Origin: Macrostomum lignano
Taxonomy: Eukaryota
Assembly (NCBI GenBank): GCA_002269645.1
Contig: NIVC01000085.1
Span: 744,001-808,000 of the forward strand
Length of the DNA: 64,000 nt
Direction of reading: 5' to 3'
Shown: one piece after another, positions 24,819 to 59,340 of the stretch
Position numbering within the stretch: the first letter of the stretch is position 1
Layout: each line of letters opens with the position of its first letter
Program-made: the position numbers and the translations under genes
Notes under the pieces: model-generated
The model's database searches: none
Seen by the model: the letters and a program-made list of their open reading frames with translations, nothing else
What the model was told of the DNA's origin: nothing

Positions 24819-26133
24819 ATGCAAACCTTTACGTTGGTCTACGGCATCATCGCTTTGCTTCTAGCCACCTCACAGCAGGTGGACTGCGTGTTCTGTCCGC
24901 CAGGATGGCTGTTGACAGCCTCGCGCGGACTGTGCATCGGGACTCCGTCGTTCCAAGCCACTGAAGGCATTCCGGCAGCTGCGGCCGCTGATTTCTGCGG
25001 CAGAGCCGTCAGGCAGGCTGGTCTGGCGAGCACAGCAGCCGACCCGGATGTGCTTCGGTTGGGGCAGAAGCTGGCGAAGGGACGGCGACTGTGGGTTTCC
25101 GGCTGTTCGAAGGCTTCAATCAAACGGAATGTGTAAGTCTGCTGTCTGTCTGGTGGTGTTGTAGATAATAGTCTCGAACGGCCCGGGCTCGATTCCAAGT
25201 ACAGTCATTAATTTGGGGCTAAATTGGAATCTCGACTTGAGTCTGCTCGTGCATGAAATTAATGGCCTTTCTTTAGCGCCAACCATCAAGGCACAGTGAA
25301 GTATATACATGTCTAACGATAATATATTCAGGGTCCCTGTACACCTCTGTGAAAGTGTGCCTGTTTTTATGACTGATAGTTTTGTGTGCTTGCTCAGGGG
25401 AGTCGTTGGAATGAGCAGTAATGAATCTCGCCAGTTGTGTGACAATGTCTCTTAATTAAAGGGTGCACACAGTCCCTGTCTCTAGCTGAAAGGCTGCTGT
25501 CTATTGCTGGGTTCCGCAGTTGAGGCTCATTAGCTTAGGTCTCCGCGTGCACGAAAATGGGCCGGGAGCAAATGGGCCAACCCACAAGGGTTAATTTCTG
25601 CATACTTTTGCCCGAGTGTACTGCGTGCATGTAATTTTGACGAACCGTAATTGCCTTTTGGCAGTGCCGAAAGGAGTCAGAGACTTGATTTAAAATAACA
25701 CTGAACAACAGACGAATAGATAAACCGTATAACTTCTCTGCAATGTTGCAGCGAAAGTCGCCAGTGCTGCGCAGTCAATCCTGATGATGGCAGCATCATG
25801 CGGACAGCATGTTCAGAGCTGCTCCTTCCTTTGTGCTCGGCGTCACCCTTGCTGAGTCGGCAGAAGCGCTTCTACTACGATTTCAGCTACACCAACGACT
25901 ACTCAATATACCCTACAACAGTGCTTCCATTGACAAGCAGTCCTGATGCAGCAACGATTGTCATTGTGATTTTTGTCACTATATTACCGATAGTCCTTTT
26001 TGCGCTGCTTGTCTGGTGCTGCATGCGCTGCTGCTGCAAGAGTAAGACGGTTGTAAAGCCAGCGCCACCGCCAGAGCCTGAACCTGAAGTTGAGGTGATC
26101 GGCATTGTGACTGTTCACACTGTGCGATATTAA
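24819..26133 (+). CDS. Type I membrane protein G1: signal peptide, C-type-lectin-like domain, RQKR site, Tyr-rich stub, TM, Cys cluster
   Basis: Exons 24819-25132 and 25752-26133 give 696 nt (232 codons), with a phase-2 GT-AG intron. Motifs CPPGW...C, A...C, LAS, LWVSG, CC...C...C fit a long-form CTLD cysteine skeleton without EPN/QPD/WND. A hydrophobic TM is followed by WCCMRCCCK. Confidence 0.8.
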
Positions 26134-27038
26134 CGACTGCTGGCTGCTGTACATGTACGAGTCGTACGTACTTCTATTTTTCGGTATACACTAGTATTCA
26201 GTGGATGTCTTTGCAACAAATAATCTTTAGCGACACTGCAATTGCGAGCTTAAAGGAATTAATAAATCACATTGCGCGTTTTTTTCTATGTAAGATACGT
26301 TCAAGAATATTAGATTCATGTAAATATCTTTAATCAGCGTTACTTTCATACTCTAACAAGTTTTATTCAAATTTACAATACTTTGTTACAGCTTTTTGAA
26401 GGAACAAATGCTTTTTTAACAAAAATTCCAACAATATACAGCTCGTACAAGGTAAACGTGTTGTTTAGTATTTTAGTTCGATATTAGTTACTCATGTTCA
26501 CGAGTAGAGCAACAGACATGCATTTTGCAAGCATGCAGGCGATTAAATTTAAAATATACTCGTATTATTATTATTTTAACGAATGCACTTCTACTCTGTT
26601 TTCCAAAGAAATATTTGTAAGCATGCACATTATAGCTCGCACTAAAAAGACATAAAGGTTGCAAATGCGGGAGAAAAGTGTTTAAATTTTTTAGCTCGTA
26701 TTGTACGTGGCAAGTGGTCTATTCATGGCATGCGCTGCTTCATTTGAATGCTCTCTAAGCTGACTCAAAGCTCCCATTTCATTCAATCAGCACGAAAACC
26801 GTCGATTCAATTTTTGGCCATCCTGCAAGTATCACAGATATATGATGCGGATTTCATTCGCTTATAAAGTTTGCTTTGTCTGTGAGCACGAAGAAAATCA
26901 ATTCAATTTTCGGGGGATCCTGCAAGTTTTCACGGATTTAAGATGCGGATTTCACAAGCTTATAAAGTCTACTTTGTTCTCATGAAAGCCAACAAAAAAC
27001 ACGTCTCGCTCGAGTCTCACTGCTAAAGCTAGTAGACG

Positions 27039-28015
27039 ATGCAAACCTTTACGCTACTCTTCAGCATCAGCGCTCTGCTTCTAGCCGCCTCACAGCAGGT
27101 GGACTGCGTATTCTGTCCGCCAGGATGGCTGTTGACAACCTCGCGCGGACTGTGCATCGGGACTCCGTCATTCCAAGCCACTGAAGGCATTCCGGCAGCT
27201 GCGGCCGCTGATTCCTGCGGCAGAGCTGTCAGGCAGGCTGGTCTGGCGAGCTCAGCAGCCGACCCGGATGTGCTTCGGTTGGGTCAGAAACTGGCGAAGG
27301 GACGGCGGCTGTGGGTTTCCGGCTGTGCGAAGGCTTCGATCGAACGGAATGGGTAATGCTGCTGTCTAGTGCTGTCTTTTCAGGGGTTCAGCGTTTAGCA
27401 CGACTGTGCAGACTCTCACGGCTCATTAGGGGTTCGATTCCCGTGTGAGCGCTAGCTGGCTCATAATTTCAAGTCTCGTTGCACGAAAATGTGACCCCCG
27501 GGGCTTGTCATGCAATCAACGACCATGAGGGCCAACCACCCCAGGCACAGAGCAGGTCAGGGTTGTTGCACACAGTACGGAAAGCCCACCTGGAGACCCG
27601 ATTACTATATACTTTCTCCATCGGTTTTTCTGTGGAACGCTTCTGAGGGTCACAAGAGTTAACCTTATGCGTACCTTTATTGATTAAGTAAACGAATCTA
27701 AGCCGTATAACTTTTCTGAAATGTTGAAATGTTGCATGCAGAGAAAGTCGTCAGTGCTGTGCAGTCAATCCCGCTGATGGAAACATCGTGCCAACAGCTT
27801 GTTCAGAGATGCTTCTTCCTTTGTGCTTCGCGCCCCCCTTGCTAAGTCGGCAGAAGCGCCAAGAGTCAGGCAGTTCTTTTTTAGGAACGGTTATGGGTGG
27901 GATTTTCGGAGTTATAGCAACGATAATTGTTTTTGCGCTTCTGATCTGGTTCTTCTGCAAAGTCTGCACAAGTAATATCGTTATTCCAGAGTCTCAGCCT
28001 GACATTGAGGACTAA
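27039..28015 (+). CDS. CTLD-like type I membrane protein G2
   Basis: Exons 27039-27352 and 27742-28015 give 588 nt (196 codons). After RQKR it reads QESGSSFLG-TM-CKVC-tail. Confidence 0.8.
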
Positions 28016-29497
28016 TTCTAGCTAGACTGTACACGTATACATGTATTGATGCACTCAAACTTTATAGATATCCGTAAAACAAAACCCTTTGGCGCCACTA
28101 CAAAGTGATAGGACGCGCACTGTGTGCACATACTAGTAATTACCGTATTTTTGCATATACGTGTAAATTAGATTTTGTAAATCTATCAACTATTATAATA
28201 GTGAATTTTGAACTCTGTACAAGGACAACTAAAGCAGCCTATATTATACAGGAAGCGACACACGCGTTTCATGGGGAAAAAGTTTTGAAGGCCACTTTAG
28301 ATAAATATTTAGCTGGATACTACAGCTTTGCAATTAACATTTATTTATATTTGTTTACAAATTCTACACGGCTAATCGAACCCTTAAAAGAGCTAGAAAT
28401 GGAGTTTAAGGCACGTAATTAATTTTAGATAGTAAGGCATACCTTGGTGAAAAAATGGGTTGCGTTAAGAAAAGTGAAATAAAAAAATAAGTTAAGCCAG
28501 AGCCGCGAATGCTTTTTTCTTAAATGAGAATAAGTTTCGACGTTCTCTGCGAAAAAAAGATATTTCCACGTGCATCCTGTAATTGCCTCGCAATATTATT
28601 ATCAAATCGGTTCTAAAATAAGCGAGTGAGTTATATTATAAATAAACATCTTGTTTCGCATGAGTCAAATGCGTCGTATTATTCACTTGTACGCGTTAAA
28701 CCTCAAATATATCGCTAACCTGGCCAGTTTGGGCCCCGCGATTTGATTTTCTCGGCTTCTCGCTCAGCTTAACCCGCGGCCTTCAGACTTTACACATCCA
28801 TTTAAAAGTGACATTGTTTGGAAAAGTGCATGGCCTTCAAAGCATTTTCCATAGATTTCAAGTTTTGCGTCCTTCTATTTTAGTAGTCCTTGAATCTGTA
28901 ACGAATTTAATTCAAATTTCTCCTATTACTCGTACAGTTTTTGAAAGTTCCGATTAGTAAACTTCAACGCGTCTGCTTTTGAACAAACTGTATCTTAGTG
29001 CTTAAACAACTTTATTGTGCGTTGGTTTGCCCTTTTTATTCATTTTTCAGAGCAAAAAGTATATTATTTTTGAAATACTGCAAATTACTAGCCTCGTATC
29101 ATGAAACAAAAAGTATAAACGCTTCTACATATGTATTTTGTCCCCAAGGAAAATTGATGAAAATTCACACTCGATGCAGTGTAAATGTTTTGAAACTGCA
29201 CCTCGAGCCGGTTTCGGATTTTGTAAATGAATGGAGAGCGGCTGATGAGAGAGGAAGTATGAAGCGAGCAATTTTGGCGTTTACGAAACAATTGGTTCTG
29301 TGCTCTGTAGAGGTTTTAAAATTTACGGCTATTAATGTGAAAATAATGAACGTACACTGTGCATATTACTTACTATTGACAGTAGTGCAAGCGCCGCGAT
29401 TAGGCCTCGAGGCCCAAGGTAATTAAGAAGCCATGCAAGGATTAACCTTGGGAGCGCACCCAACCCCCGCCAAGGTGTTTTGAGTCGTGCCTTTTAG

Positions 29498-29818
29498 TAC
29501 TACTCATACTCTACAACAGTGCGTCCATCAAGCAGTCCTGATGCATTAACAATTTTTCTTGTAATTGTTTCCATTATTGCACCGATAGCCATTTTTATCC
29601 TTCTGGTCTGCTGCTGCGTGAAATGCTGCTGCAAGAGTAAGACGGTTGTAAAGCCAGCGCCGGCGCCAGAGCCTGATGTTGAGGTGATCGGCATTGTGGC
29701 TGTTCACACTGTGCGCTATCAACGACTGCTGGCTGCTGTACATGTACGTACTTGTATTTTTCGATGTATTGTTTCGTGGATGTCCTTCTTTAGCAACACA
29801 CTGCAAAAGACGAGCTAA
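29498..29818 (+). pseudogene. 3' fragment (G3) of a G1-type CTLD-TM gene: Tyr stub, TM and tail only
   Basis: YYSYSTTVRPSSSPDAL-TM-CCCVKCCCKSKTVVKPAPAPEPDVEVIGIVAVHTVRY. The G1 stop TAA is CAA here, so the frame reads through. No upstream CTLD sequence is present. Confidence 0.75.
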
Positions 29819-30856
29819 AAGGACTTTATTAACAGTATTGTGCGTTTTTCCATGTAATACATGTACAAGAATATTTGATGCATGTAAATCATTTTTTAAT
29901 TCAGCGTTACTTTCAAACTCTAACGAGTTTTATTGAATTTTTGATAACTACAACTATTTGTTAAATACAAGATTTCGGTATTTTTTCGTATTCGAGCATG
30001 TTATTTTTTACTCATATTTACGAGTAGCGAGACAAACGTGCATGGATTCGAGTTGAAATAGATAAATATAAAACACAAATTATACGCTTCTATTTAGTCT
30101 TCCAGAAAAAAATTGTAAGCATGCACACTATACTCGTAGATACAGTGTAAATCATTCTAAACCCCTTAAATCGGCTTTGTGGGTGTACTGTAAATAGGTG
30201 AATGGACAGAATGAATTTGTAAATGTGGTGCTTTTTTGACGTTAACGAAATAAAATTACAATGAATAAAGTTACGATGAAGTGAATCTACTGCTACAATA
30301 GAATGTGAAAGGGTTATTTTTTGCTTTTATTGACCAACAGAAAGCCGCAAGGAGCAGCTTGACTTACGTGCGTTGTGTTTGACTTTCATGCAAGTAGCCT
30401 AGTTCTCAACGATAAAAGAATCATCGAAAATTAAAACCACATAACAACGCTAACAACAAAGTACAACAAGACAGAACCTTACTTACTTACTTACTGGTAC
30501 TTACTTAGTTAATTACTTTCACACTTTGAATCTATCACCATAAATCTATTCCAACTTTCCAATCAAAATCAAAGAGAAAGATCTGAGTTTAAATGAGTTT
30601 CTACAATGTCCCTCAAACTTTTAAAATTTCACTTTCGCGCAAACCATATTTCAACCACTTCTAACTTTGGTGATACAAAATGAAAAACTAAAAAGTCAAC
30701 ACATACTACTACCTCTAATATTTGTACTAAAATAGCCAAGTAGCATATACTCTACATCGTTAACCCATTACACATTGGCGACCAAGTGACAGAAAAGGAA
30801 TCTCAGCAAGCATCTGTGGGGTCTAGGAGGCTAAAAGACCAGCAAAAATTGTTCAG

Positions 30857-31137
30857 AGTTGCAATTAAACACATTTACAACTGGTCTCAGTTGCAATTAA
30901 ACGCTTTTACAGTGGGTCTCAGTTGCAATTAAACACATTTACAACTGGGTCTCAGTTGCAATTAAAAATTTACAACGGGTCTCAGTTGCAATTAAAAATT
31001 TACAACTGGTCTCAGTTGCAACTAAACACATTTACAACTGGGTCTCAGTTGCAACTAAACATATTTACAACTGGTCTCAGCTGCAACTAAACACATTTAC
31101 AACTGGGTCTCAGTTGCAATTAAACACATTTACAACG
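30857..31137. repeat. 32-bp minisatellite, about 9 units
   Basis: Same unit and same flanks as 21032-22770. Confidence 0.93.
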
Positions 31138-32024
31138 AGACGCTTGATAATAACTGCTCCCAACCTAGTTATCACTGCGGAGTATGTCTAACGTATCCAC
31201 AAAACGACGACTCTCTTTACATTCTGCATACAAGCCTCTGCAAAGCAATAAGCTTTCGTACTGCATTTGCTTTTGAGTCGAATGCAAATTTAGCTTATAT
31301 TTGCTCATTAGACCTTGGCATACCGGAAGTCAGCTCGGCAAATCAATAAAACTATGCATACAAAATCCAAATTAAAAAAACTGATTCCAAACCGTGAATG
31401 GTAACTGGGAGAATTTGCTTTGTGACTTTCAACCTACTCGCTGAGAAACAACTATGAGCCTAAAAATATGTAAAAGATAAATCTTCATCAACCTTTGATC
31501 TCCTGACCCCAGAGCATGAAACAGGAAATTTTAGTAAGTTTTTTCAAGACCAGCGATTTACAAAGCTCAGTAAAAACGCCTAAAGCTGAAGAACTCCATA
31601 ACTACCTGCATACACAAATTTATTGAGTCAAGCACAGACACCGCCATAAAACAAAGAGCATTGTTGTAATTTGGAACAAGCTGAAAATTTGACCAACCAT
31701 TATAAAGACAAATACGGTACAGGCAAAGATTGTCCAACGTATTGAAAGTCAGTGTAAAGTCTTGGCGCCGTCTCTGATTCCGCAACTGCGTGTGACATAA
31801 CAGACTGTCGATCCTTTAGTTCAAGCAAATTGAGTATTGAGCCTGTTGTACTTTTAGCTGCGTAGCAGCCTTTGCAGGTGCAAGTGGACTGACTGTGAAC
31901 CTACTTTGGCTTGGCTGGATCAGCAATCTAGGGGTGCCTGCTTGTCCGTTTGGTTGTTTGCAGCTTCTCAAGGTTTTACAGGTGAGGTAAAACCTATGCG
32001 AAGGTAAAAATCATGCAGGTCCTT

Positions 32025-32544
<520 letters not shown>

Positions 32545-32730
32545 TTGGATGCAACACTTCGCCGCAAAAATATTAAAAACACAACTTAAGTTTTGCAATT
32601 GCCAATGTTTCTGCTCGAATTTATATTTGTTGTATTGAACAGATCAAGCCTCAGATTCAGGTCATTACAATTTGCTTGAGTCCATGCTCAGCTCATCAAC
32701 TGAGCCAGTCGGTCACCGAACCGCTCGAGC

Positions 32731-33477
32731 TCAGCCACGCACGAACAGAGTCCACTCGGGCCCGCTCAGGTGGCCAGGCGGGTACACGAACTCCAGCAGG
32801 TGGCAGGCAAGCTCCTGTCGGGAGAAAACGGCGGCCCGGCAGTCGGCTCTGGCGCTGCACCGGAGCAGGCAGTCCTCGACGGACTGAGCAGCGACAGGCC
32901 AAACGGAAGGGGCACCGGATGTCACGGGAGGGCTGAACTGCTTCACTACCGTGTAGGTGTTGCGGTCCGAAACTGATATTGAAAAAATAGCATCAACTCA
33001 ATAGTAAAAATACTTAAAAAATGACTGCTGCTACTGAGCAGTACGAGCAAAAGTCACAAAAGTACCTGAGTAGCTCAGAGAGAACACAGAGTTGTGGTAT
33101 ATGCCGCCACATTTCTGCATCGGGTTTCCGTAGCAGGCCATGCTGCAGTTGCCTTCACCCGCCGAGCCATGGGATCCGTACGAGTTGCCGCAGTAGCACT
33201 CCCTGCGGAACTGCACACCGAAGTAGGCGAATTTGCCCGCCGAGCAGATGCCGCTGCACAGCTCGTGCGACATCTCCATGCTTGCGACTCCCCCGTAACC
33301 ATTAACTGTTAACCCACCGAACTTTGTAACTCCAGTGAGCCCGTTCAAGTCTCTAGGTGTCTCAATAGGGTCTTTATAGCAGCCCAAGTATTTAAAGCCG
33401 ACGAGTCTACAGGCGACGCAAGTGAGCAGGAGGGCAGCGCAGAACAGAACGGACAGAGCCGCTGCTGGGCGGAGCAT
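32731..33477 (-). CDS. Secreted WSC + PAN/apple-like protein, copy C (intact)
   Basis: Exons 33477-33066 and 32972-32731 give 654 nt (218 codons), with a 93-bp GT-AG intron and the same domain motifs as copy B. Confidence 0.88.
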
Positions 33478-33796
33478 TTTGCTGCTCAGACAGAAGCTTG
33501 GAGCAGCTTCGATCTGTTGCGTCTCCAACTGTTTAGAGCAAGCAGATATATAAGTGCCAGATTCAGATGGAGCGTCGCTTCTTGACCAATCAGTGGTGTT
33601 CTTGAGCAGAGATCGAGAGATCCAACTTTAGTGTGTACACCGTATATGGCAATTTTCAAATCAGGGCCAATATGAATCTTTTTTACTTGTGGGAGAACCT
33701 ACCTAAGTAACTGCTGGCCTCCTACGTGGCTTGCAGGTCGGTTGTTGACTTGATTTGCGGCAGTACCCAAAAGCTCACTCAAAGACAAACTGCTAA

Positions 33797-33969
33797 TTTT
33801 GGGGGGGGAGGATCTAGTTTGGGGGGAGGATGCAGTTTGGGGGAAGGATCCAGTTGGGGGGGGGCGGTTCCAGTTTGGAGTCGGGATCCAGTTGGGGGGG
33901 GGGCGGATCCAGTTTGGAGGGGGGATCCAATTTGGGGGGCAGATCCAGTTTGGGGGCGGATCCAGTTTG
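33797..33969. repeat. G-rich degenerate 18-22 bp tandem repeat (GGGGGGCGGATCCAGTTT)
   Basis: About 9 units, each with a run of G. Confidence 0.85.
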
Positions 33970-37304: not shown

Positions 37305-37318
37305 TGCATTCTTCTGTA

Positions 37319-39090
37319 AGGGAGTCTTCACAAGCGCTAATTTTCATAAGCGCTAACTCACCTACTTTGACAAGCGCTAAACTTCACAAGCGCTAAACTT
37401 TACAAGCGCTAAAGTCAATAGTTTTGAAAAAGTCAATTGAAAGTCAATAGTCAATTGAAATTCAATAGCTTTAGCACTCAGAAGCGACAAAATTTTATTG
37501 AAGTAAACCTTAGATCAGAACACATTTAATAACCATCGAAGCATAGCATTGGGGTGGGTGACAGAGATAAGGCATGCAAGATGGAATAGAGAATGAGCAA
37601 TGATGTACATAGAGTACGCAAACCCTCACCAGACAAAATCCCACCCCAAACACTGACCCCAGAGCCCACAGTCCATAGATGATCAGAGTCAGTCAGAGTC
37701 CAACACTGCCCCCCATCAAATTAGCACTTGTAGCAGACCGGACGTCTTGGTCGGAGCTCATAGGAAGGCCCACCAGCATTCGCGCTGTCATTCTGAACCG
37801 TCGGCTCGTCAGCTGATTCCGGAACGACCATCTTGGGCGTACCAGCTGGGGGCTGCAGATGCTCAGGCTCGCCAGTGCTGTCATCCTCCTGATTCTCTGG
37901 ACGGTCGCTCCATTGGTTGCGGTGGGCCAGACGCAGTCCTCCACACGGCAAATCAGTTGGTGTCTCCAGAGCAGTATTTTGGCCATGCTGAACCACGAAC
38001 TTGGCCTTGACGGGTCCGGTCTCTGGGCGCATCCGAAGCCAGATGGCATCTCCGACTTGTTCAGGCATTGATAGAGAATGACGCAGCCTCCTCCCCCACA
38101 TCACGATGTCCGGTGACGCTGGTCTAGATCCACTCGGCCGGCCAGTCCTCACGGTCAGGAGCAGCTTCTGCAGAAATCGTTGAAATGGGACAACTCGGTT
38201 CCAGGTTCTCAGGCCGTCCTTCAGGCTCCTTACGAGCTTTTGAGCCTGTCCGTTTTATGCCGCGTGGTATGGTAGAGTGTGGACCTCCCTGCAGCCGATT
38301 TGAGTTTAGCCACTGAGACAGTCGGGTCGATTTAAACTCAGGTGCGTTGTCGGATACCAAGGTTTGCGGCACACCGTTGCGAGCAAAGACAGCTCTCAGG
38401 ACTCTCATGACAGTGTCCGTTGACTTGTCCGGAACCGGAATGGCTTCAGGCCAGCCTGAGTAAGCGTCCGACAGTAGCAGCAGCAGGCCGACTCCCGAGA
38501 CTTCGCAGTGGTCCATGTGGACGCGGCTCCATGGAGTTGTCTCCGGTTTGACAAAATCCCACCCCAAACACTGACCCCAGAGCCCACAGTCCATAGATGA
38601 TCAGAGTCAGTCAGAGTCCAACACTTCACAACCGCTAAAACACAAATGTCGGCCACTTTCACAAGCGCTAAACTTCACGTAACGTTTCGCATTTTCAAAG
38701 TAGACAGTGAAATTATTATAGTATATTAACATTTTAGCGCTTGTAAAAGAAGCCGACATTCGTGTTTTGAGGATTGTAAAGGTTAGCGTTTGTGAAGTTT
38801 AGCGCTTGTGAAGTTTAGCGCTTGTGAAGTTTAGCGTTTGTGAAGTTTAGCGCTTGTGAAGTTTAGCGTTTGTGAAGTTTAGCGCTTGTGAAGTTTAGCG
38901 CTTGTGAAGTTTAGCGCTTGTGAAGTTTAGCGTTTGTGAAGTTTAGCGCTTGTGAAGTTTAGCGTTTGTGAAGTTTAGCGCTTGTGAAGTTTAGCGCTTG
39001 TGAAGTTTAGCATTTGTGAAGTTTAGCGCCTGTGAAAGTAGGCGGCAAATTTTTAACTATTATAAAGTTTAGCGCTTGTGAAAGCGACCC
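37319..39090. mobile_element. Non-autonomous TIR element with 16-bp subterminal repeats (TTCACAAGCGCTAAAC), hosting a nested Gypsy remnant
   Basis: Repeats lie in opposite orientation at the two ends (37327-37415, and 38783-39030 with about 15 units). A perfect 8-bp TSD CTTCTGTA is at 37311-37318 and 39091-39098. Confidence 0.8.
37499..38623 (-). mobile_element. Internally deleted Gypsy LTR retrotransposon (integrase core, PPT, 3' LTR)
   Basis: Integrase motifs PWSRVHMD, DAYSGWPEA, VFARNGVPQTLVSDNAPEF. The polypurine tract GGGGGGCAG is directly followed by TGTTGG at 37705. The first ~72 bp of the LTR are repeated at 38623-38552 and joined straight to the integrase. Confidence 0.88.
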
Positions 39091-42600: not shown

Positions 42601-43574
42601 ATGCAAACCTTTACGTTGGTCTTCGGCATCCCCGTTTTGCTTCTAGCCGCCTCACAGCAGGTGGACTGCGTGTTCTGTCCACCAGGATGGCTGTTGACAG
42701 CCTCGCGCAGACTGTGCATCGGGACTCCGTCGTTTCAAGCCATTGAAGGCATCCCGGCAGCTGCGGCCGCTGATTCCTGCGGCAGAGCTGTCAGGCAGGC
42801 TGGTCTGGCGAGCTCAGCAGCCGACCCGGATGTTCTTCGGTTGGGTCAGAAGCTAGCGAAGGGACGGCGACTGTGGGTTTCCGGCTGTGCGAAGGTTCCG
42901 ATCGAATGGAATGGGTAAGGCTGCTGTCTAGTGCTTTTTCGGGGGTTCAGTATTTAGCACGACTGTGCAGTCTCTCACGGCTCATCAGGGGTTCGATTCC
43001 CGTGTGAGCGCTAGCTGGTCTAATAAGTTTAAGTCTCGTTGCACGAAAAGGTGACCCTGGGGCTTGTCATACTATCAATGAACATGAGGGCCAACCACCC
43101 CAGGCACAGAGCGGGTCAGGGTTGCTGCACACAGTACGGAAAGCCCACCTGGAGACCCGATTACTATATACTTTCTCCATCGGTTTTTCTGTGGAACGCT
43201 TCTGAGGGTCACAAGAGTTAACCTTATGCGTACCTTTATTGATTAAGTAAACGAATCTAAGCCGTATAACTTTTCTGAAATGTTGAAATGTTGCATGCAG
43301 AGAAAGTCGTCAGTGCTGTGCAGTCAATCCCGCTGATGGAAACATCGTGCCAACAGCTTGTTCAGAGATGCTTCTTCCTTTGTGCTTCGCGCCCCCCTTG
43401 CTAAGTCGGCAGAAGCGCCAAGAGTCAGGCAGTTCTTTTTTAGGAACGGTTATGGGTGGGATTTTCGGAGTTATTGCAACGATAATTGTTTTTGCGCTTC
43501 TGATCTGGTTCTTCTGCAAAGTCTGCACAAGTAATATCGTTATTCCAGAGTCTCAGCCTGACATTGAGGACTAA
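42601..43574 (+). CDS. CTLD-like type I membrane protein G4 (near-identical to G2 in exon 2)
   Basis: Exons 42601-42914 and 43301-43574 give 588 nt (196 codons). Confidence 0.8.
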
Positions 43575-48190: not shown

Positions 48191-48499
48191 TCATCGGGGA
48201 GGTGACCCGTGGTCGCGAACTCGTGCTCGTGCGCCATGCAGTAGATTGAGGCATTTGAGGAACTCCCCAAACTCCTGAATCCTGAATCCCAATGCGAAAT
48301 ACTAATAAGGTGAAAAATGGAATTGCATCTAGTGTCTTTAATGAAGAAGCGAAATTCGATTGCTGTCGCTCCCACTATCAGCTCCTACCAGAGATCTGTA
48401 GGAGGTGCTACAGAAGCACTGCTGACTGAGCTGTATACTACGGGAAGCTGCTCAGAGAGCAGACCCTGCTCACTCTAGTGAGTCCTCCCATAGGCCAAG

Positions 48500-48884
48500 A
48501 ATCCGCCCCCGGAATCCGCCCCCGGAATCCGCCCCCGGAATCCGCCCCCGGAATCCGCCCCCGGAATCCGCCCCCGGAATCCGCCCCCGGAATCCGCCCC
48601 CGGAATCCGCCCCCGGAATCCGCCCCCGGAATCCGCCCCCGGAATCCGCCCCCGGAATCCGCCCCCGGAATCCGCCCCCGGAATCCGCCCCCGGAATCCG
48701 CCCCCGGAATCCGCCCCCGGAATCCGCCCCCGGAATCCGCCCCCGGAATCCGCCCCCGGAATCCGCCCCCGGAATCCGCCCCCGGAATCCGCCCCCGGAA
48801 TCCGCCCCCGGAATCCGCCCCCGGAATCCGCCCCCGGAATCCGCCCCCGGAATCCGCCCCCGGAATCCGCCCCCGGAATCCGCC
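48500..48884. repeat. 13-bp perfect minisatellite (GGAATCCGCCCCC), about 29 units
   Basis: Read directly from the sequence. It explains the 13-aa-periodic ORFs on both strands. Confidence 0.97.
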
Positions 48885-49714: not shown

Positions 49715-50660
49715 ATGCAAACTTTTACGCTGGTCTTCGGCATCAGCGCTTTGCTTCTAGCCGCCTCACAGCAGGTGGACTGCGTATTCTGTCCGCCAGG
49801 ATGGCTGTTAACAACCTCACGCGGACTGTGCATCGGGACTCCGTCATTTCAAGCCGCTGCAGGCATCCGGGCAGCTGCGGCCGCTGATTCCTGCGGCAGA
49901 GCCGTCAGGCAGGCTGGTCTGGCGAGCACAGCAGCCGACCCGGATGTGCTTCGGTTGGGGCAGAAACTGGCGAAGGGACGGCGGCTGTGGGTTTCCGGCT
50001 GTGCGAAGGCTTCGATCGAACGGAATGAGTAAGGCTGCTGTCTAGTTCTGTTTTCGGGGATTCAGCATTTAGCACGGGCCAACCACCCCAGGCACAGCGG
50101 GTCAGGGTCCCGCTGACGAAAGCTCCCCTAGAAACTGGATTAAGATTGCTATATAGTTTATCCATCGGTTTCTACAGGAAGCTTCGACAATAAACTCTCA
50201 AGAGAGTGAACCTTATTTACATGTAACTTTATTGATCGAATATACGAATCTAAACCGTACAACTTCTCCACAATGTCGCAATTGTTGCAGTGAAAGTCGT
50301 CAGTGCTGTGCAGTCAATCCCGTTGATGGAAAAATCACGCCAACAGCTTGTTCAAAGCTGCTCCCTCCTCTGTGCTCCGCGCCTCCCTTGCTGAGTCGGC
50401 AGAAGCGCCAATACTCTTACTACTACTACTACTTATACTCCACAACAGTGCCTTCATCATACTACTCAAGCAGTTCTTATGTAGGAACGGTTCTAGGTGT
50501 GATTTTTGGAGTTATAGTACCGATAGTGATTGTTGTGCTTGTGATCTGGTGCTGCTGCAATTGCTGCAAAAGCAAGACGGTTGTCGTAAATCCAGTGCCT
50601 CAGCCCCAGCCTATGGGTATGGGGGTGAACATTGTGAATGTTCAGAATATGCAGCATTGA
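49715..50660 (+). CDS. CTLD-like type I membrane protein G5
   Basis: Exons 49715-50028 and 50291-50660 give 684 nt (228 codons). After RQKR it reads QYSYYYYYLYSTTVPSSYYSSSSY-TM-WCCCNCCK-Pro/Gln tail. Confidence 0.8.
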
Positions 50661-52136
50661 GGACTGCTATAGCTGCACTCAAACTCTATATGGATGTCTC
50701 TACAACAAAAAACATTTAGCACCACTGCAAAGTGAGAGAACCTAGCTACTGTACATGTAACTACCGTATTTCATTTTATTCCATATACATGTAAGTCATA
50801 TAGCTTTGATAAATATATATCATGCTTTATTTCAAACTCTGTAACGAATTTTATACGAATTTCTTATATTACAGTTTTTAAAAGTTCCAACTAGTAAACT
50901 GCAACGTGTCTGTTTTTTTAATAACTGTATTTTAGTGCTTAAAGAACTTTATTTTGCGTTAGTTCGCTATTTTTACTCATATTTTAAAGCAAAAAATAGA
51001 TTGCATACTGCATTATCATGAAAAAAGTATAAACGCTTCTATTTTGTCACCAAGGAAAAATCGGTAAAATTTCACACTCGATACAGTGTAAATGTTCTGA
51101 AACCACCTCCGGTAAGTGAGTGGAGCGGTTAATCGGTGAAATATGAAATGCGCAATTTTGGCGTTCACGAAATAAAGTTCTGTGCTCTGTAGATCTTTTA
51201 AAACTTACTGCTTTATAAATGTGAAATAACGGGCTTTACATACTACTTTACTAATGGCAGTAGCGCAAGCTCTGCGATTAGGTCGCAATCAGGCCCCGCG
51301 CAACCGTAAGTCAAAAGAAGAAGTAGTCAACAGAAATTCGCTGAGGAGACACCGGCGGCCGGTATCTCGAAAGAAGGTGCGAAGCTCACGGCCGTTGTCC
51401 GGGTTGGTTAGCTCGTCCATCCGCTGGTTAATGTGGCCGAGGTGTTTTGAGCCGTGCCTTTTTGAATCAAGGACAGAAGGTCCGCGGTCTTCTCTCTCCT
51501 ATGCCACAGGGAAAGACAGGTGGGAGAGGGATCAAACCGCTTTGCAACAAAATATCTTTGGAAGGAAGATGGCAATTAAGACCCAATGACCACTAGAAGT
51601 TACTGGTAACTTCTGCATGTATATATGTATAGTGGTTCTTGTAAGGATCTTGCATATCTGCCTGAGATCGGTTCTGTTACATGTAAGTGAGAACAACAGA
51701 TATTCAGAGACTTTCCTGTTCAGGTTTGGGCATCGCAGAGCGGGTCTTCCTGCTTGGCCTAGCTGTATTCGGTGCAACACTAGCCTGTTCCACTGGAGCT
51801 GCATGGTGTTGCTGGTGGTGCCACCTGTAGCTGCTGATATGCGGTTGTTTGCAACCTAGGCATGGGTAGCCTCATCAGACTCATGGTTGACTCAAATGGT
51901 TGACTCAAAAAGCCGCATATGGGTAGCTGCCCGGCAGCTCCTTGGCGAGAGAATCCGCGAGATCGCTGCCCAATGATATATTACTACTGTCGAGAAAAAA
52001 ACTTTGATCATGACAGATTATCCAACTTTTGTTATGCCAAAGAAATGAAAAGTGCCTGGTTTAAGTTTTCACCGGATTTCTGTTGGTTTCTATTAAAGCA
52101 GGTCATTTCTGCTTGCTTTAGTCCATGCTCAGCTCT

Positions 52137-52471
52137 GGACTCAGAGATGTCAGAGATGCCTGTGGCCGCGGCGAACAGCTGGAACTGAGCCAGCCACTTG
52201 CTCCACTTTGTGTGCCGCACGAGGGGCTCCTCGCGCAAGTTCAATGGAGGCGGGGTCGGTAGGCCTGCCTGCGACGCCATTGTAGTGCGCTTGTGTCGGT
52301 GTAGAAGTTGGGCTCTCATGGCATATATATACTAGTTTGAGTACATGCGAGCTAGTGAGCACAACGTGCCACTGTTGCGTAACAGTGCAAGAGCGTACGC
52401 GCGATGCAAAGGCACGTGGGGGGAGGCTAGAGCGAGAGCCAAGGAGAGACCCGACATAACAGTGCACTACA
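52137..52471 (-). mobile_element. Gypsy 5' LTR, PBS and gag N-terminus fragment
   Basis: A 191-bp LTR at 52281-52471 has 8-bp inverted termini TGTAGTGC...GCACTACA. On the minus strand it is followed by A-TGGCGTCGCAGG (PBS-like, overlapping the ATG) and MASQAGLPTPPPLNL...WSKWLAQFQLFAAATG (gag-like). It replaces the WSC D-equivalent body in this paralogous unit. Confidence 0.72.
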
Positions 52472-52998
52472 CATTGTATCGCCCAGCAGGCAGTCGACGA
52501 AATGCCGAGGGCGGAGCACTCATCCTCGACAGTTGAGTGCCTGCAGCATCATTTGCACCAGCTGTGAGCATTTCGACTCGTCGCAGATGATGAGGCCTGT
52601 CAGCTGGAGTCGCCAACGGCACAACAGGCTGCTTGAACGAACCAGATTGCCATGTAGGTGACACGCTTATCGCCTTATACTACTGTGTGCTTATAAGGGG
52701 TGTTTCTGAAGGTCCACCGGGCTGATGACCTCCTCTATGTCGTGGTAACAGCTTCAGGCCGATGATAGCATTTTCGATGTGTATGCTGCAGTGTTAGTGG
52801 ATACTGTAAGAAGTGAGTCCAGATAGGTAGATTGGTTGGTTGGATCAGAGATGGAGTTGGAGATAGGGTTGGCTTAAGTAGACATATTTTGTATGAAAAG
52901 AAATTATTGCCAGTCGCTCTACTGAAAGTAGCATTGATTAAATAAGCGGTCATATTACGCAAAGTAGTGGAACTTCAAACCGCAAAACGAGCTCGTAG

Positions 52999-53002
<4 letters not shown>

Positions 53003-53036
<34 letters not shown>

Positions 53037-53063
53037 TGTGTATGTGTGTGTGTGTGTGTGTGT
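53003..53063. repeat. Compound (AG)n(TG)n microsatellite
   Basis: Read directly from the sequence. Confidence 0.9.
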
Positions 53064-53335
53064 ACATTTAGTTAGACAACTGAGATTGAGAGGGAAAAAC
53101 TTGAGGCGAATCGCAATTGCCTTCGCCCAATGCCTTCGGTCGTGGGGTACCAGTTACTTCTGACACAGCACGTTGAATTGTTGAATAAATGTGAGGTTTT
53201 CCGTCAGTTCCTCAACACATTTTCCTTGCGCTCTCCTAAATAATGTTCAAAGGGTCTTCAGAGTAGTTGAATCTGTTATTCAGAATTTATAATTGCAGAA
53301 GCGGTAAACGCGTCTGACTCTCGATCACACGACCG

Positions 53336-53425
53336 TCTGGCCACTTAAGCGGACCCGAGTGGACTCTGTTCGTGCCTGGCTGAGCTCGAGCGGTGAGGTG
53401 ACCGACTGGCTCAGTTGATGAGCTG
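53336..53425 (+). pseudogene. Inverted fragment (I) of the WSC-PAN gene 3' end
   Basis: Reverse complement of about 54004-54092 with few mismatches; paralog of fragment E. Confidence 0.75.
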
Positions 53426-54044
53426 TTGGACAAAGATCTGTAGCGAATCTCATCAAATCTTACGGAGTCAGTCTCCGAGAAAAATATGCACGGATGGGAC
53501 AAGAGGGTTGGGCCAGGAAAATTCGTGTACAGAGCCAGCTTGGACGGGTTGCACCGGTCACTATACTGGGTAGAAAGCGGAGCGCATCGCAGAACTCCTG
53601 TACAGCTTTTAACGGTTGTAGGCCCGGGGAGAGTTCAGAAATAAGTCGTGAAAAAATTGGAACTCTTTGGCACCCAATTGGCAACGTTTACATGAAGATC
53701 GAGTTCTCTGGAGTTTATCAAACTATGCTCCAAGATAGAGGGAAATCAAATTTTTTGCTGCAAAAAGCTCAAGGATTCCAAGGCGTCTGGTGAAATATCG
53801 AGCGGAAGTGTCACTATAGCTTCGAATGCATGTGGCACAAAACAATTCAAAGCAACGGATGCTTTAGTCAAATGTATAGCTTGTTTTTTGCAGTAGATAG
53901 AGTAAAACAATCGATAGTTCTAGGTTTTCAATTTAATTTGTCTCAAAAACGAGGCATTGATGCGCCAAAACCAGGTCGTTACAGTTTGCTTGAGTCCATG
54001 CTCAGCTCACCAAATGAGCCAGTCGGTCACCGCACCGCTCGAGC

Positions 54045-54779
54045 TCAGCCACGCACGAACAGAGTCCACTCGGGCCCGCTCAGGTGGCCAGGCGGGTACA
54101 CGAACTCCAGCAGGGGGCAGGCGAGCTCCTGTCGGGAGAAAACGGCGGCCCGGCAGTCGGCTCTGGCGCTGCAGCAGAGCAGGCAGTCCTCGACGGACTG
54201 GGCAGCGACAGGCCAAACGGAAGTGGTACCGGATGTCACAGCAGGGCTGGACTGCTTCACTACCGTGTAGGTGTTGCGGTCGGAAACTGAAATTGAACGA
54301 AAGTGCATGGTCTCATAATTCCATAATGACTGCCGTTACCGAGCAGTAAAATAAAATTACAAAAGTACCTGTGTAGCTCAGTGAGAACACAGAATTGTAA
54401 TAGTAACCGCAAACTTCTGCTGCTGGTTTCCGGAGCAAGCATTGCTGCAGTTGCCTTCACCCACCAAGCCATGGGATCCGTACGAGTTGCCGCAGTAGCA
54501 CTCTTTGCCGTGCTGCACACCGAAGTAGGCGAATTTTCTCGCCGAGTAGATGCCGTTGCACATCTCGTGCGACATCTCAGTGCTTAGCCATACTCGATCT
54601 TCACTAACGACATCAAATCCGCCAAGTTTGGTGAGCCCTCTGAGTCCCTTTAAGTCCCTGAGTGACCCATTGTCTTTATAGCAGCCCAGGTAGGAGAAGC
54701 GGGCGAGTCTGCAGGTGACGCAAGTGAGCAGGAGGGCAGCGCAGAAGAAAACGGGCAGAGCGGCTGCTGGACGGAACAT
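54045..54779 (-). pseudogene. Secreted WSC + PAN/apple-like gene, copy J (1-bp frameshift near 54410)
   Basis: Exons 54779-54368 and 54286-54045, with an 81-bp GT-AG intron. AAG TTT GCG GT stands where the paralogs have KCGG, and WSC Cys residues are replaced (GIYS, QKF). Confidence 0.8.
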
Positions 54780-56576
54780 TTCGCTGCTCGGTGAGAGGCT
54801 TGGGGTGACGGTTAGTTTCTGCAACGCTCCAGGTTTTAAAAGTGTCGAAACGTGACCGATTCAGATGGGAACGCTGTTTGACCAATTGGCGGTGTTTTGG
54901 AGAAGCGTGTCGCCCTCCATTGGGCAGTTAGGGATTTCTGATTTCCTACTCATACTTGAAGGGCATGCCAATCTTTGAGAACAAAATAGACAATTGGCAG
55001 AAATACACAGGGTCTAATTACCCCAGGTCCCGCACACAATGGTGTGGTGAACTAATTGTGCAGGATGAGTCCTGGTTTGGCCTCTTACCTTAGCCAGTGA
55101 TGCTCTCACCTGCCTCTATTCAGTGGGACGATAGTTCAAGCGACCTTGACTCCTATTTTGCACATTGCAAGGTGCACTTAGAAAGGTACTCGTGCCGCAG
55201 GTGTTAAGGCAGGCCTCCTGTGTCTTGTCGAGCTGATTAGTTGGCGTAGGTGGTCCTGGTAAGACCATAAACTCACCTCTAAGGTCCCAGTGCAACTCCG
55301 TGCCAATGGAAGCTTTACCAGAGAGCAGTCTGGTAGCTTAAGGTTCCCCATGGGCCCTTGAATCCGACGATATTGTTTCTTTAAGGATGCAGCTTGTGGC
55401 TCTGTGCATGTGTTCTCCAAGAAGTCACACCTTCATTGTCACTTTAATCCAATGGCTTCTATTCAAAGGGTGAAGTGGATCACACAGTGCCTCAGGCTTC
55501 GGACACAGACTCAAACCAGATGTCGTGATGCCAGTGTTGGTCGGTCCGGCCCTTATATACATTTAGATTATAATTTAGATATTTCCTCGTCAGGAACGGT
55601 GACCCAAACGCCGGCGGTCCGGAACTCGTGTCTGTCAATCTGTAGCAGATTAAGACATTTGAGGAACTTCGTACGAGCGTATGCTCAAGAAGCCACATTG
55701 TCTTATAGTAGTTGAAGTGCTCGCCGACTGAAATGGCCGATGCTGCTCGTTCCAGTGAGTTTTCTCAAAGGTCTCTACCTCCTTTGTCAACAAAGAGGTT
55801 TGCCGGCAGCGTAAACAATCAGCACAAAAAGTAGTTTTATGGGATTGAATAATAGTGTAGTTTGCCACAGACCGTTTTTTTGGACGTATTTTGCGCATCA
55901 TGCGCTCAGTGTAGTGCCTATAGTAGCATTTCTAGCATTCAAAAGCAGTGTTTAACTTTCTTTGTAAAAAATATTAAAACATTTGACCAGCAGACAAGCC
56001 TAACAAAAGTATAAATGCTTAACAGACAAGATTTTTTTGTAGGGGCCGCAACCACAAAGTGACGTCAGTGTAAGCGATAAATTCAATTTAGACTACTGAG
56101 AAATGTATACAAATAAAAATTTGAATCGTAAAATGTCTTTTTAAACACAGTGTGGTCCGAAAAAAATTTTAGCCATAAAAGAAACGTTTGGCAATGGCTG
56201 AGCGATAAGACAAAACACTCCGTCTGACTCAGCGAGGTTTTATCCCCCCCCTCCAAATTTTAGTGTGTCACAGTTGATATCAGCGTTCAAAACTCAGCCT
56301 TCAGCGGAGAACGACGTGGTTGCAGCCGCCACCAGATAAGTCCGCAGGAACCCACGACCTTCGCACAGGGCGAAGGCCTGCATATCAATCACTCAAAGAG
56401 CTGCGCAACCAAGCTGTGAGGCCCACCAAGACATCAGAGCGACGGATCAAGACTACGAGTCGCTCCCCCCGGAGCCGTAAATATACCAAAAATATTGTGG
56501 AAGTGCAGCTCGTCTAACAAATAGTAGGAAAATAAACGTCAACAAAAACATAAAAAGTAAACTTTGTTTAATTCTA

Positions 56577-56614
56577 GCCAACGCGTTTCGTCAAACACAA
56601 GACGTCGTCAGGGC
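56577..56614 (-). ncRNA. Minimal type I hammerhead ribozyme motif (sense copy in 3' pseudo-LTR)
   Basis: The minus strand reads GCC-CTGACGA-C-GTC-TTGTGTTT-GAC-GAAA-CGCG-TT-GGC: core CUGANGA/GAAA, stem II GTC/GAC, stem I GCC/GGC and palindromic ACGCGT stem III. Confidence 0.72.
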
Positions 56615-57262
56615 AAATTCACTCAACCTAAGATCACACCACCAATATATTTAAGCAAAAATCACTGTACAGTCCAGAGGCGGGTCAAAACAGTCCGGTA
56701 GAATTTAGAAAGTGCCAAGTACACAACAAAGTGAGAGAGAAAAAAAAAATAAAAAAGGCACGGCTCTGCTCACAGTACTCTTAGCTCACGCTCCACCCCA
56801 TTGCCAGCAAGCTGCACATTCAGGTTGGGTTTGTGCATTCTGATATACGAAGCTTCGATAATCTTAAGCTTATGGTCAAATTTGCACCCATCCAGCACTT
56901 AAAAGAGCTGAATCGGTTCACCGTCACAGCATTTTTTACAAACAAGCAGATGGTCATTAATCGCAGAGCTTTTTAGCCAATGTTCCCTAGCTCTAGTGTG
57001 CAGGTGTCGCTTCGTTTTTCCAATGTAGGAAACGCTCTGATCCTCAGAGCAGCGAAATTGGTAAACAACACCAGCCCTTAGAGCAAGTGGAACAGCTGAT
57101 TGCCAAGTACCAAGTGCCAAGTACATAACAACTCTCACTTTGTTATGTACTTGGCACTTTCTAAATTCTACCGGACTGTTTTGACCCGCCTCTGGACTGT
57201 AACAGTGATTTTTGCTTAAATATATTGGTGGTGTGATCTTACACACCATGTTGATTGAATTT

Positions 57263-57300
57263 GCCCTGATGACGTCTTGTGTTTGACGAAACGCGTTGGC
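57263..57300 (+). ncRNA. Minimal type I hammerhead ribozyme motif (inverted copy)
   Basis: GCC-CTGATGA-C-GTC-TTGTGTTT-GAC-GAAA-CGCG-TT-GGC. It differs from the other copy only at the variable N7 position. Confidence 0.72.
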
Positions 57301-57800
57301 TAGAATTAAACAAAGTTTACTTTTTATGTTTTTGTTGACGTTTATTTTCCTACTACCAAAAATATCGTCTGTTATAGAATTAGGCAATTGCTGCAGAGTT
57401 AAGTTTTTCATTAAATCCAGTTTTAACCAGTCACCGAGCTGTTTTACTTTTTCAATTCTATCCACCTATACTATAAACCAGGGGTCGGCAAACTTCGGCA
57501 CGAGCCTCTCTATCCGGCCCTCCGGTCCGCCGAACTTCACTATGGCAATCCGGCCCTCTCAATTCTTTACGCTAAATTCTTTTTAAAGGGTAAACCCGCT
57601 TGGCGAAAACTTCCAGTCTATAGAGCACAAAACTCACAAAGCTGCAGTTTTTGTCAGACAAAAGAACTGAAAAGAACTGTGAGCTATGGGTTTAATAACT
57701 CATGGTGGCTGTGCAGTATCTGCGAGCCTTGTCTCATATCCGTCGGTGTATCCTAACCCTAAGCTATGGCGGAGTCTTTTGAATGCGTGCTCCATCTATT

Positions 57801-57985
57801 CCGATGGAGAAGAGAGCCTGCAACTCTTCTCTCCGATGGAGAAGAAGGATGGATTCTCTTCTCTCTCTCTCTGCAACTCTCCGATGGAGAAGAGAGCCTG
57901 CAACTCTTCTCTCCGATGGAGAAGAAGGATGGATTCTCTTCTCTCTCTCTCTGCAACTCTCCGATGGAGAAGAGAGCCTGCAACT
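57801..57985. repeat. 80-bp tandem repeat (about 2.3 units)
   Basis: CCGATGGAGAAGAGAGCCTGCAACT recurs at 57801, 57881 and 57961, but is single-copy at the paralogous site about 42248. Confidence 0.9.
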
Positions 57986-58278
57986 AAAAAGGTCGCACTA
58001 AAAGCCATAAAAAATTGCATATTCTATCGTAAGCAAACGATCCTATTCATGAACAGGCGCTGCTTCGGTTGAATGCTCTCTATATAACTAAGTTGACTAT
58101 TCAAAGCTCTCATTTAATTCAATGCGCACGAAAACAGTGAATTCAATTGTCTGCCAGCCAAGTTTGCGCGGATATATAGATGCAATATCTCTCAAGCTTA
58201 TAAATTAGGATTGCTTCGTGTGCCATGAAAGACACAAATTTCCACGTCTCGTTTGAGTCTCACTGCTAAAGCTAGACG

Positions 58279-59340
58279 ATGCAAACTTTTACGTTGGTCT
58301 TCGGCATCAGCGCTTTGCTTCTAGCCGCCTCACAGCAGGTGGACTGCGTGTTCTGTCCGCCAGGATGGCTGTTGACAACCTCGCGCGGACTGTGCATCGG
58401 GACTCCGTCATTTCAAGCCGCTGCAGGCATCCGGGCAGCTACGGCCGCTGATTTCTGCGGCAGAGCCGTCAGGCAGGCTGGTCTGGCGAGTACAGCAGCC
58501 GACCCGGATGTGCTTCGGTTGGGGCAGAAGCTGGCGAAGGGACGGCGGCTGTGGGTTTCCGGCTGTGCGAAGGCTTCGATCGAACGGAATGGGTAAGGCT
58601 GCTGTCTAGTTCTGTTTTTCGGGGGTTCAGCATTTAGCACGGCTGCCGACTCTCACGGCTCATCAGGGGTTCGATTCCCGTGTAAGCGCTAGCTGGCCTC
58701 ATAAGTTAAGGTCTCCTGCAAGAAAATGCGATCCCGGGGCTTGTCATACTATCAATGACCATGAGGGCCAACCACCCCAGGCACAGAGCGGGTCAGGGTT
58801 GCTGCACACAGTGCCGAAAGTCCCCCTAGACACTTGATGACTATAATATTTTGTCCATCGGTTTCTGTGGAAAGCTTCTGAGGGTCACCTTTATTGATCA
58901 ATTAAACGAATCCAAACCGTATAACCTCTCCGAAATGTCGCAATTGTTGCAGTGAAAGTCATCAGTGCTGCGCAATCAATCCCGCTGATGGAAACATCAC
59001 GCCAACAGCTTGTTCGGAGCTGCTCCCTCCTCTGTGCTCCGCGCCTCCCTTGCTAAGCCGGCAGAAGCGTCAATACTCTTACTACTACTACTACTTATAC
59101 TCCACCACAACGCGTTCACCTTACTACGACTCGTACTATTACTCAAGCGGCGCTTATGTAGGATTAGTTATCGGTGTGATTTTGGCAATTTTAATACCAA
59201 TAGTGATTGTTGTGCTTGTGATCTGGTGCTGCTGCAAGTGCTGCAAAAGCAAGACGGTTGTCGTAAATCCAGTGCGTCAGCCTCAGCCTATGGGTATGGG
59301 AGTGAACATTGTGAATGTTCAGAATATGCAGCACCACTGA
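58279..59340 (+). CDS. CTLD-like type I membrane protein G6
   Basis: Exons 58279-58592 and 58953-59340 give 702 nt (234 codons). After RQKR it reads QYSYYYYYLYSTTTRSPYYDSYYYSSGAY-TM-WCCCKCCK-tail. Confidence 0.8.

Follow-up and report, generated by a model that had tools for sequence, protein, structure and literature searches.

Transmembrane collagens and ZP-domain proteins are membrane-anchored precursors that are freed at dibasic, furin-like sites (PMC10538796). A family of small proteins encoded in tandem by the flatworm Macrostomum lignano is built in a comparable way, with an R-x-K-R motif placed between a conserved extracellular module, hereafter the head, and a poorly conserved membrane anchor. 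We describe this family as it occurs in a 64,000-nucleotide (nt) stretch of DNA, called the window below (contig NIVC01000085.1 of assembly GCA_002269645.1, positions 744,001 to 808,000, forward strand); all coordinates are positions in the window. The M. lignano proteins are unlike the ZP-domain and collagen precursors in being much smaller, and in two of them, the products of genes G2 and G4, the motif stands unusually near the membrane; no ZP or collagen domain was found in a Pfam scan (no Zona_pellucida match), and only the design principle is common. A second resemblance in layout is to those type I membrane proteins, such as layilin, CD302, and chondrolectin, that have only one C-type lectin-like domain (CTLD); they likewise combine a signal peptide, one small Cys-rich α/β domain, a stalk, a membrane helix, and a short tail, whereas the M. 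lignano head has no Lectin_C match, no long loop, and no sugar-binding motifs. The family is real, under selection, and lineage-restricted. The explanation that we favor, to which we give about an even chance, is that its members are small type I membrane-anchored precursors whose conserved head would be the functional product, released by a convertase; its chief competitor is a surface receptor that stays uncleaved and whose tails are class-specific.

The copies were located through the open reading frame (ORF) listing and motif searches of the whole window. They form one tandem array on the + strand, composed of five intact two-exon genes (G1, G2, G4, G5, and G6) and one truncated pseudogene (G3). 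The family span runs from 24819 to 59340, exactly the limits given by an earlier reading of the same DNA, made from its letters without database searches (the sequence-only reading), and the five intact genes lie where that reading had placed them, with ORFs and splice sites intact in five of five. The exons are as follows.

24819..25132, + strand: G1 exon 1, encoding the signal peptide and the N-terminal 84 residues of the mature head, with a phase 2 end
25752..26133, + strand: G1 exon 2, encoding the remainder of the head, RQKR (25858-25869), a Tyr-rich stalk, the membrane helix, CCMRCCC, and the terminal ...VHTVRY, followed by the stop codon
27039..27352, + strand: G2 exon 1
27742..28015, + strand: G2 exon 2, with RQKR at 27848-27859, the Tyr stalk deleted, a short tail ending ...QPDIED, and only two juxtamembrane Cys
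29497..29722 (about), + strand: G3, a 5'-truncated fragment of a G1-like exon 2
42601..42914, + strand: G4 exon 1, only 93% identical to G2 exon 1
43301..43574, + strand: G4 exon 2, with RQKR at 43407-43418; from the exon junction onward the protein is that of G2
49715..50028, + strand: G5 exon 1
50291..50660, + strand: G5 exon 2, with RQKR at 50397-50408, (TAC)5.3 at 50418-50433, and an internal AGCAG|T acceptor at 50473/50474
58279..58592, + strand: G6 exon 1
58953..59340, + strand: G6 exon 2, with RQKR at 59059-59070 and (TAC)5.3 at 59080-59095; the spliced product is PAA91506.1

In all five genes, exon 1 encodes a segment of the form MQTFTL...CPPGW...RLWVSGC, and exon 2, which follows 262-619 bp downstream, encodes ...QCCA(V/I)NP...LLSRQKR and a hydrophobic segment. 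The splice signals are present in five of five (donor G|GTAA(G/T), acceptor (T)GCAG|), with an identical phase-2 junction, and the spliced proteins are 231 (G1), 195 (G2), 195 (G4), 227 (G5), and 233 (G6) amino acids (aa) long. The G6 protein is identical to GenBank PAA91506.1 (BOX15_Mlig000673g3, "hypothetical protein"), recorded on this same contig and assembly. As the M. lignano annotation was built from a genome-guided StringTie/TACO assembly of RNA-seq reads (PMC5730564), the joining of exon 1 to exon 2 in the G6 type has the backing of a gene model derived from transcripts, and the two-exon splice assumed in the sequence-only reading holds. The G3 fragment contains the end of the Tyr stalk, the membrane helix, CCCVKCCC, and ...VHTVRY; it is classed as a pseudogene because the head is missing and the stop codon is lost (TAT CAA). 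Its use as an alternative 3' exon of G2 was considered and ruled out: it has no stop, begins within the stalk, and has no supporting gene model.

The five proteins adopt the same overall architecture: a signal peptide of ~20 residues, a head with nine Cys, a Pro-rich linker, a stalk, one membrane helix, and a short tail. The mature head (residues 21-144, 124 residues) is predicted to be of α/β make-up, and its nine Cys, at positions 23, 26, 39, 60, 96, 110, 111, 125, and 133, are invariant in all five genes. Residues 1-144, comprising the signal peptide and the head, are 86-95% identical among the genes and end in an invariant LLSRQKR, as the sequence-only reading had described. The linker preceding the stalk reads SAPPLLSRQKR. 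The stalk that follows has about 17-22 residues in G1, G5, and G6, of which 29-45% are Tyr, while only ~8-10 residues separate RQKR from the membrane helix in G2 and G4. The residue after RQKR is Gln in four of the five genes, and the extracellular stub that begins there has zero Cys. The membrane helix is the sole part modelled with confidence (AlphaFold predicted local distance difference test (pLDDT) of 61-80). At its cytoplasmic end stand the Cys-rich segments WCCMRCCCK in G1, WCCCNCCK in G5, and WCCCKCCK in G6, with FFCKVC in the equivalent position of G2 and G4; the juxtamembrane Cys cluster that had been ascribed to all the proteins is thus found, with five Cys, in G1, G5, and G6, but is down to two Cys in G2 and G4. 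These Cys are followed by Lys, which fits the positive-inside rule, and their placement, judged from the protein sequences, would suit S-palmitoylation as it is placed in type I membrane proteins. The tail has ~8-30 residues, the shortest being the ~8 residues that follow the hydrophobic stretch in G2 and G4. The G1/G3 and G5/G6 tails have in common KSKTVV, a Pro-rich stretch, and an alternating hydrophobic C-terminus.

The RQKR motif occupies residues 141-144, 8 residues past the last Cys of the head and exactly at the boundary between the domain and the stalk, where the constraint on the protein ends. R-x-K/R-R is the consensus of the proprotein convertases, and the M. lignano motif lies, as furin-type sites do, in a lumenal or extracellular segment that appears accessible, the Pro-rich linker. 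It is invariant in all eight available sequences, including the five genes of the window and two further M. lignano database proteins (P0001 and P0002), and it is kept despite synonymous changes in or beside its codons (AGT/AGC for Ser and CGC/CGT for Arg). The sequence-only reading was right that the motif is there.

Comparison of the paralogs reveals two separate steps along the gene, one in silent divergence and one in amino-acid constraint. Over all pairs, DNA identity is 91-97% in exon 1 and 82-100% in the exon-2 part of the head, and it is 62-75% in the tail between classes. The ratio of non-synonymous to synonymous substitution (dN/dS) in the head is 0.25-0.45 at dS of 0.10-0.22 in every pair, including the most diverged, and the head is therefore under purifying selection. 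In between-class pairs, the tail has significantly more non-synonymous relative to synonymous changes than the head has (Fisher p about 1e-4); conservation of the protein drops sharply right after RQKR, as had been claimed, and what shifts at this point is amino-acid constraint. The step in silent divergence is located at the intron, not at RQKR: between classes, the proportion of synonymous differences (pS) is 0.11-0.135 in exon 1, but the part of the head encoded by exon 2 has a pS of 0.29, similar to the tail dS of 0.24-0.60. Because its pS is below that of the exon-2 part of the head, exon 1 has been additionally homogenized, and part of the near-invariance of the head is due to this homogenization. 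The G1 intron is unalignable with the others (47-51% identity), yet G1 exon 1 is 93-94% identical to theirs. The similarity of exon 1 among the paralogs has most likely been kept by gene conversion or recombination. A mosaic history is also visible in the G2/G4 pair, which is 96-100% identical in the intron, exon 2, and 300 bp downstream, and unrelated in the upstream 300 bp (55%); their first exons differ at 23 of 314 positions, 10 of which are private to G4, the rest forming a mosaic with G1, G5, or G6. This pattern suggests that exon 1 of one of the two may have been converted by an unsampled paralog, or that a breakpoint may lie near the ATG.

The part beyond RQKR had been described as a hypervariable remainder falling into three classes. 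The three tail strings are indeed present exactly as then quoted, but the classes are not unrelated: the tail types align in frame at the DNA level and represent one homologous sequence. The stalk core (TAC TC. ACA ACA GTG C.T.CA), the membrane helix, and the KSKTVV segments are common to G1, G3, G5, and G6, while G2 and G4 correspond to the G5 type from which the whole Tyr stalk has been removed by an in-frame deletion. At the deletion joint, CGC CAA runs straight into the (G/T)A(G/C) TCA (G/A)GC AGT TCT T codons that precede the helix. The Tyr run of G5 and G6 is a perfect (TAC)5.3 microsatellite, and P0002 has one Tyr fewer than G6 in this run, which is direct evidence of (TAC)n slippage. 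Between classes, the proportion of non-synonymous differences (pN) in the tail is 0.31-0.41 and pS is 0.21-0.47, that is, about equal; whole-tail comparisons show no significant excess of pN (one-sided p 0.08-0.84), and the lowest value for a sub-region is p=0.05, over eight stalk codons. The tail has therefore diverged in a neutral-like manner, with no sign of diversifying selection. Since the three sub-types are related by indels and drift, "hypervariable" overstates the case, and stalk, helix, and tail are one homologous segment that has diverged near-neutrally between the sub-types, its length altered by (TAC)n slippage and one in-frame deletion. The sharp contrast between a constant head and a variable tail arises from differential constraint, exon-1 homogenization, and microsatellite slippage, not from designed hypervariability.

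In another reading frame, exon 2 of both G5 and G6 is overlapped by a 123-aa ORF (50348-50719 and 59010-59381, respectively, both on the + strand). It is most simply a by-product of the 88% DNA identity of G5 and G6, not a coding feature.

The head has no relatives outside M. lignano in the collections searched. A word-indexed search of 5.8 billion proteins returned three M. lignano clusters and nothing else, and an exhaustive HMMER search with the head over 1.84 billion representative proteins gave no true homologue outside this species. Three candidates were rejected as spurious: P0004 and P0006 are bacterial repeat proteins that score through many weak repeats, and P0005 has only a short C-PGW...C motif in common with the head. 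As the sequence-only reading had recognized no described family, so the Pfam and protein searches gave no family match, and all homologue matches are confined to M. lignano copies. By these comparisons the head is to be regarded as an orphan domain and the family as restricted to M. lignano.

A CTLD fold had been assigned to the head, and landmarks of such a fold can be fitted by eye in canonical order: C-x2-CPPGW-x8-C, A..FC in a predicted helix, GLAS, and LWVSG. In this fit, C26 and C39 take the places of C0 and C0', C60 that of C1 in the predicted helix, and LWVSG that of WIGL; nine Cys in total are set against the canonical C0-C0', C1-C4, and C2-C3 framework. The spacing C111-13-C125-7-C133 is identical to that of rat MBP-A, and hhalign pairs these Cys, without statistical support. 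The secondary structure predicted in both AlphaFold runs comprises three strands, two helices, and three strands. None of the profile and structure comparisons supports the assignment. When G1, G2, and G6 were scanned with hmmscan against Pfam-A at E<=10, neither Lectin_C (PF00059) nor Xlink was matched; the matches obtained at this threshold (TMEM52, Prominin, and Baculo_F) are all weak and stem from the composition of the membrane anchor. The match of G1 to TMEM52 (PF14979; E=0.005, 17.3 bits, below the curated cut-off of 26.4) runs over its membrane helix, Cys cluster, and Pro-rich tail and is limited to this compositionally biased anchor; G2 and G6 have no such match, and the head is unrelated. 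A phmmer search of the PDB gave nothing relevant, only chance matches to clumping factor. Alignment by hhalign with seven CTLDs, each first confirmed as Lectin_C in Pfam, was not significant (Prob 0.36%, P=0.17, score 12.8): the column-shuffled controls had scores of 10.6 +/- 2.0, with 9 of 60 at or above the value of the true alignment. Alignment with Link modules was not significant either. The AlphaFold2 models have low pLDDT values, 41.1 with the head alignment and 38.8 with the full-length alignment, both alignments being without depth; the prediction failed because relatives are lacking. Foldseek found no match in the PDB at E<=0.001, and CTLDs account for 3 of the 34 sub-threshold matches. 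The long-loop region is almost absent, with ~14 residues from WVSG to the CC pair, and none of the sugar/Ca2+ motifs EPN, QPD, and WND was found in the head sequences. A long loop with Ca2+/sugar motifs defines the true C-type lectins, not all CTLDs. On our own reading of the protein sequences, the PROSITE-type C-terminal CTLD signature does not occur. The CTLD assignment is hence unsupported, the Pfam, PDB, hhalign, AlphaFold, and Foldseek results being all negative or uninformative, and "CTLD-like" is retained as a lead only; a compact lectin-like binding module is possible.

In the explanation that we favor, a furin-type proprotein convertase of the secretory pathway would cut after RQKR, and the head would come free as a soluble protein of about 13 kDa. 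The head would not be held covalently after the cut, because the stub has no extracellular Cys. The membrane part would serve chiefly for trafficking and anchoring, like its counterpart in other membrane-anchored precursors, and would not be the business end of the molecule. Several observations weigh against this explanation. Cleavage itself we infer from the motif and its setting, and we consider it about evenly balanced; R-x-[KR]-R arises by chance in 5.9% of shuffled ectodomains; and the site of G2 and G4, at ~8-10 residues from the membrane, may limit the access of a protease. The models of the head and of the full-length protein reach a pLDDT of 41 and 39 only. G1, G2, and G4 are all unannotated, the support for expression and splicing coming from the G6-type gene model. 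Finally, the G5 and G6 cytoplasmic tails differ by 2 non-synonymous and 3 synonymous changes (pN 0.02 vs pS 0.15), which suggests that this conserved tail may be functional in its own right and more than a dispensable end.

The main rival takes up several of these points. The proteins might be uncleaved surface receptors or adhesion molecules whose head binds a common ligand, with tail types that differ in sorting, signalling, or lipid-raft behavior through palmitoylation and RQKR as no more than a basic linker. We regard this as possible though not probable. It would account for the purifying selection on the G5/G6 cytoplasmic tails and for the KSKTVV, Pro-rich, and hydrophobic C-terminal features that these share with the G1/G3 tails, and it has no difficulty with a motif that is weak evidence by itself, given its 6% chance frequency, or with a G2/G4 site so near the membrane. 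It leaves unexplained why RQKR should be invariant at the exact boundary of domain and stalk, in a Pro-rich and presumably exposed linker, and it sits poorly with tails that diverge near-neutrally between classes and that are down to ~8 residues in G2 and G4. A different objection to the precursor is that the array may consist of evolutionary debris: recent, decaying, functionless duplicates, with heads alike through recent duplication or conversion. The low dS and mosaic history of exon 1 agree with this view, as do the clear pseudogene G3, the missing annotation of G1, G2, and G4, and the richness of the region in repeats and transposon fragments. We nonetheless find it unlikely, as the five ORFs, all splice sites, and the nine Cys are intact, the head dN/dS of 0.25-0.45 extends to the most diverged pairs, and G1 exon 1 has stayed 93-94% identical beside an intron that can no longer be aligned.

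The sequence-only reading had proposed the reverse of the precursor, in which a common cap is shed and unmasks a paralog-specific tethered ligand, identity tag, or Tyr-crosslinked or sulfated peptide. The stub is indeed the part that differs between paralogs, it is rich in Tyr in G1, G5, and G6, and the Gln that follows the site in four of the five genes could cyclize to pyroglutamate by general peptide chemistry. Against a functional peptide stand the near absence of a stub in G2 and G4, a Tyr run made of slippage-prone (TAC)n that varies between near-identical copies, a pN about equal to pS in stalk and tail with no non-synonymous excess, and the existence of only three tail types, all of them homologous. 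Protease-activated receptors and the Stachel of adhesion G protein-coupled receptors (GPCRs) are alike in concept, in that proteolysis exposes a tethered new N-terminus. In these receptors the peptide is received by the seven-transmembrane (7TM) domain of the same molecule, whereas what is left of the M. lignano protein consists of one helix, a short tail, and a low-complexity or near-absent stub, and offers no such partner to a tethered ligand. We therefore judge the unmasked peptide very improbable. Lower still, and little more than speculative, is our estimate for a combination of both ideas, a minimal, Macrostomum-only CTLD-like head released at RQKR together with a functional, paralog-specific, pyroglutamate-capped Tyr-rich stub, which might become cross-linked through oxidized Tyr to the matrix of a surface or egg shell, or act as a cell-type tag; if it were true, one gene would specify a two-product precursor with its constant and variable halves both in use. 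Should cleavage and release of the head be borne out, the family would provide a compact, genetically tractable membrane-anchored precursor, and in its head a novel extracellular domain without relatives, perhaps with a stripped-down lectin-like fold. M. lignano is a flatworm in which transgenesis and RNA interference (RNAi) work.

The tandem family is largely missing from public annotation. GenBank holds only the G6 type, as a "hypothetical protein"; G1 and G2 are absent from the protein collection searched, and no gene is called at G4 in the public annotation. A literature search found no paper that mentions the M. lignano loci of this family. The annotated gene range of PAA91506.1 covers 9,626 bp, from the start of G5 to the end of G6 (window 49715-59340), so that G5 and G6 share a single 9.6-kb range. 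The two may have been annotated as a single transcription unit, which could be a polycistronic or a read-through precursor; precursors of both kinds have been described for M. lignano (PMC5730564). P0001 and P0002 are 96-97% identical copies located on other contigs, and a further locus (L001) duplicates window 53752-61316 with 97.5% identity. The latter duplicate is consistent with the known redundancy of the neopolyploid M. lignano genome (PMC5730564; PMC10733133).

Two automatic database entries depart from the gene models given here. The UniRef protein P0003 (167 aa, 'Secreted protein') joins G5 exon 1 to the internal AGCAG|T acceptor at 50473/50474, so that the C-terminal half of the head is missing from it, as are RQKR and the Tyr stalk. 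As read from the DNA alignment, G1, G2/G4, and G3 have this acceptor sequence as well, and G6 lacks it. P0003 probably reflects an error of gene prediction or a minor product, and it would halve the Cys framework of the head. G6 and its near-identical copies carry the automatic UniProt name "Brain protein I3" (BRI3), as a UniRef label only. They are like BRI3 in combining Tyr/Pro-rich low-complexity sequence with a Cys-rich hydrophobic segment, and the label was probably assigned because of this resemblance in composition; the BRI3 profile gave no Pfam match at E<=10. BRI3 itself has no signal peptide and no Cys-rich ectodomain, and has another topology. The name is probably wrong, an annotation artefact.

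The surroundings of the array contain a second multicopy gene and numerous repeats. A gene with WSC and PAN/Apple domains is present on the - strand in four copies (9181-10010, 19253-20092, 32658-33528, and 53968-54824) with 76-87% DNA identity; its WSC-domain exon matches Pfam at E=3e-15 and 1e-11 and its PAN/Apple-domain exon at E=5e-8. These copies are interleaved with the G1-G6 family, and the public annotation of the stretch examined has no gene call for any of them. A 32-bp satellite of unit AGTTGCAATTAAACACATTTACAACTGGGTCTC forms one array of ~1.7 kb (21029-22770) and two shorter ones (30857-31136 and 18680-18934). Other tandem repeats are (ACAG)130 at 32025-32544, 29.7 perfectly identical copies of the 13-bp unit GAATCCGCCCCCG at 48499-48884, 16 copies of a 16-bp unit at 38774-39036, and 2.3 copies of an 80-bp unit, with 100% identity, at 57800-57985. 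Two transposon remnants lie on the - strand: an integrase core ORF (rve, E=3e-11) at 38124-38594 and, at 56899-57465, an ORF with a sub-threshold GIY-YIG match (E=4e-4, 21.2 bits vs a cut-off of 22.6), possibly from a Penelope-like element. Outside the family span, a segmental duplication of ~3 kb relates 404-3425 to 14419-18360 with 93-97% identity.

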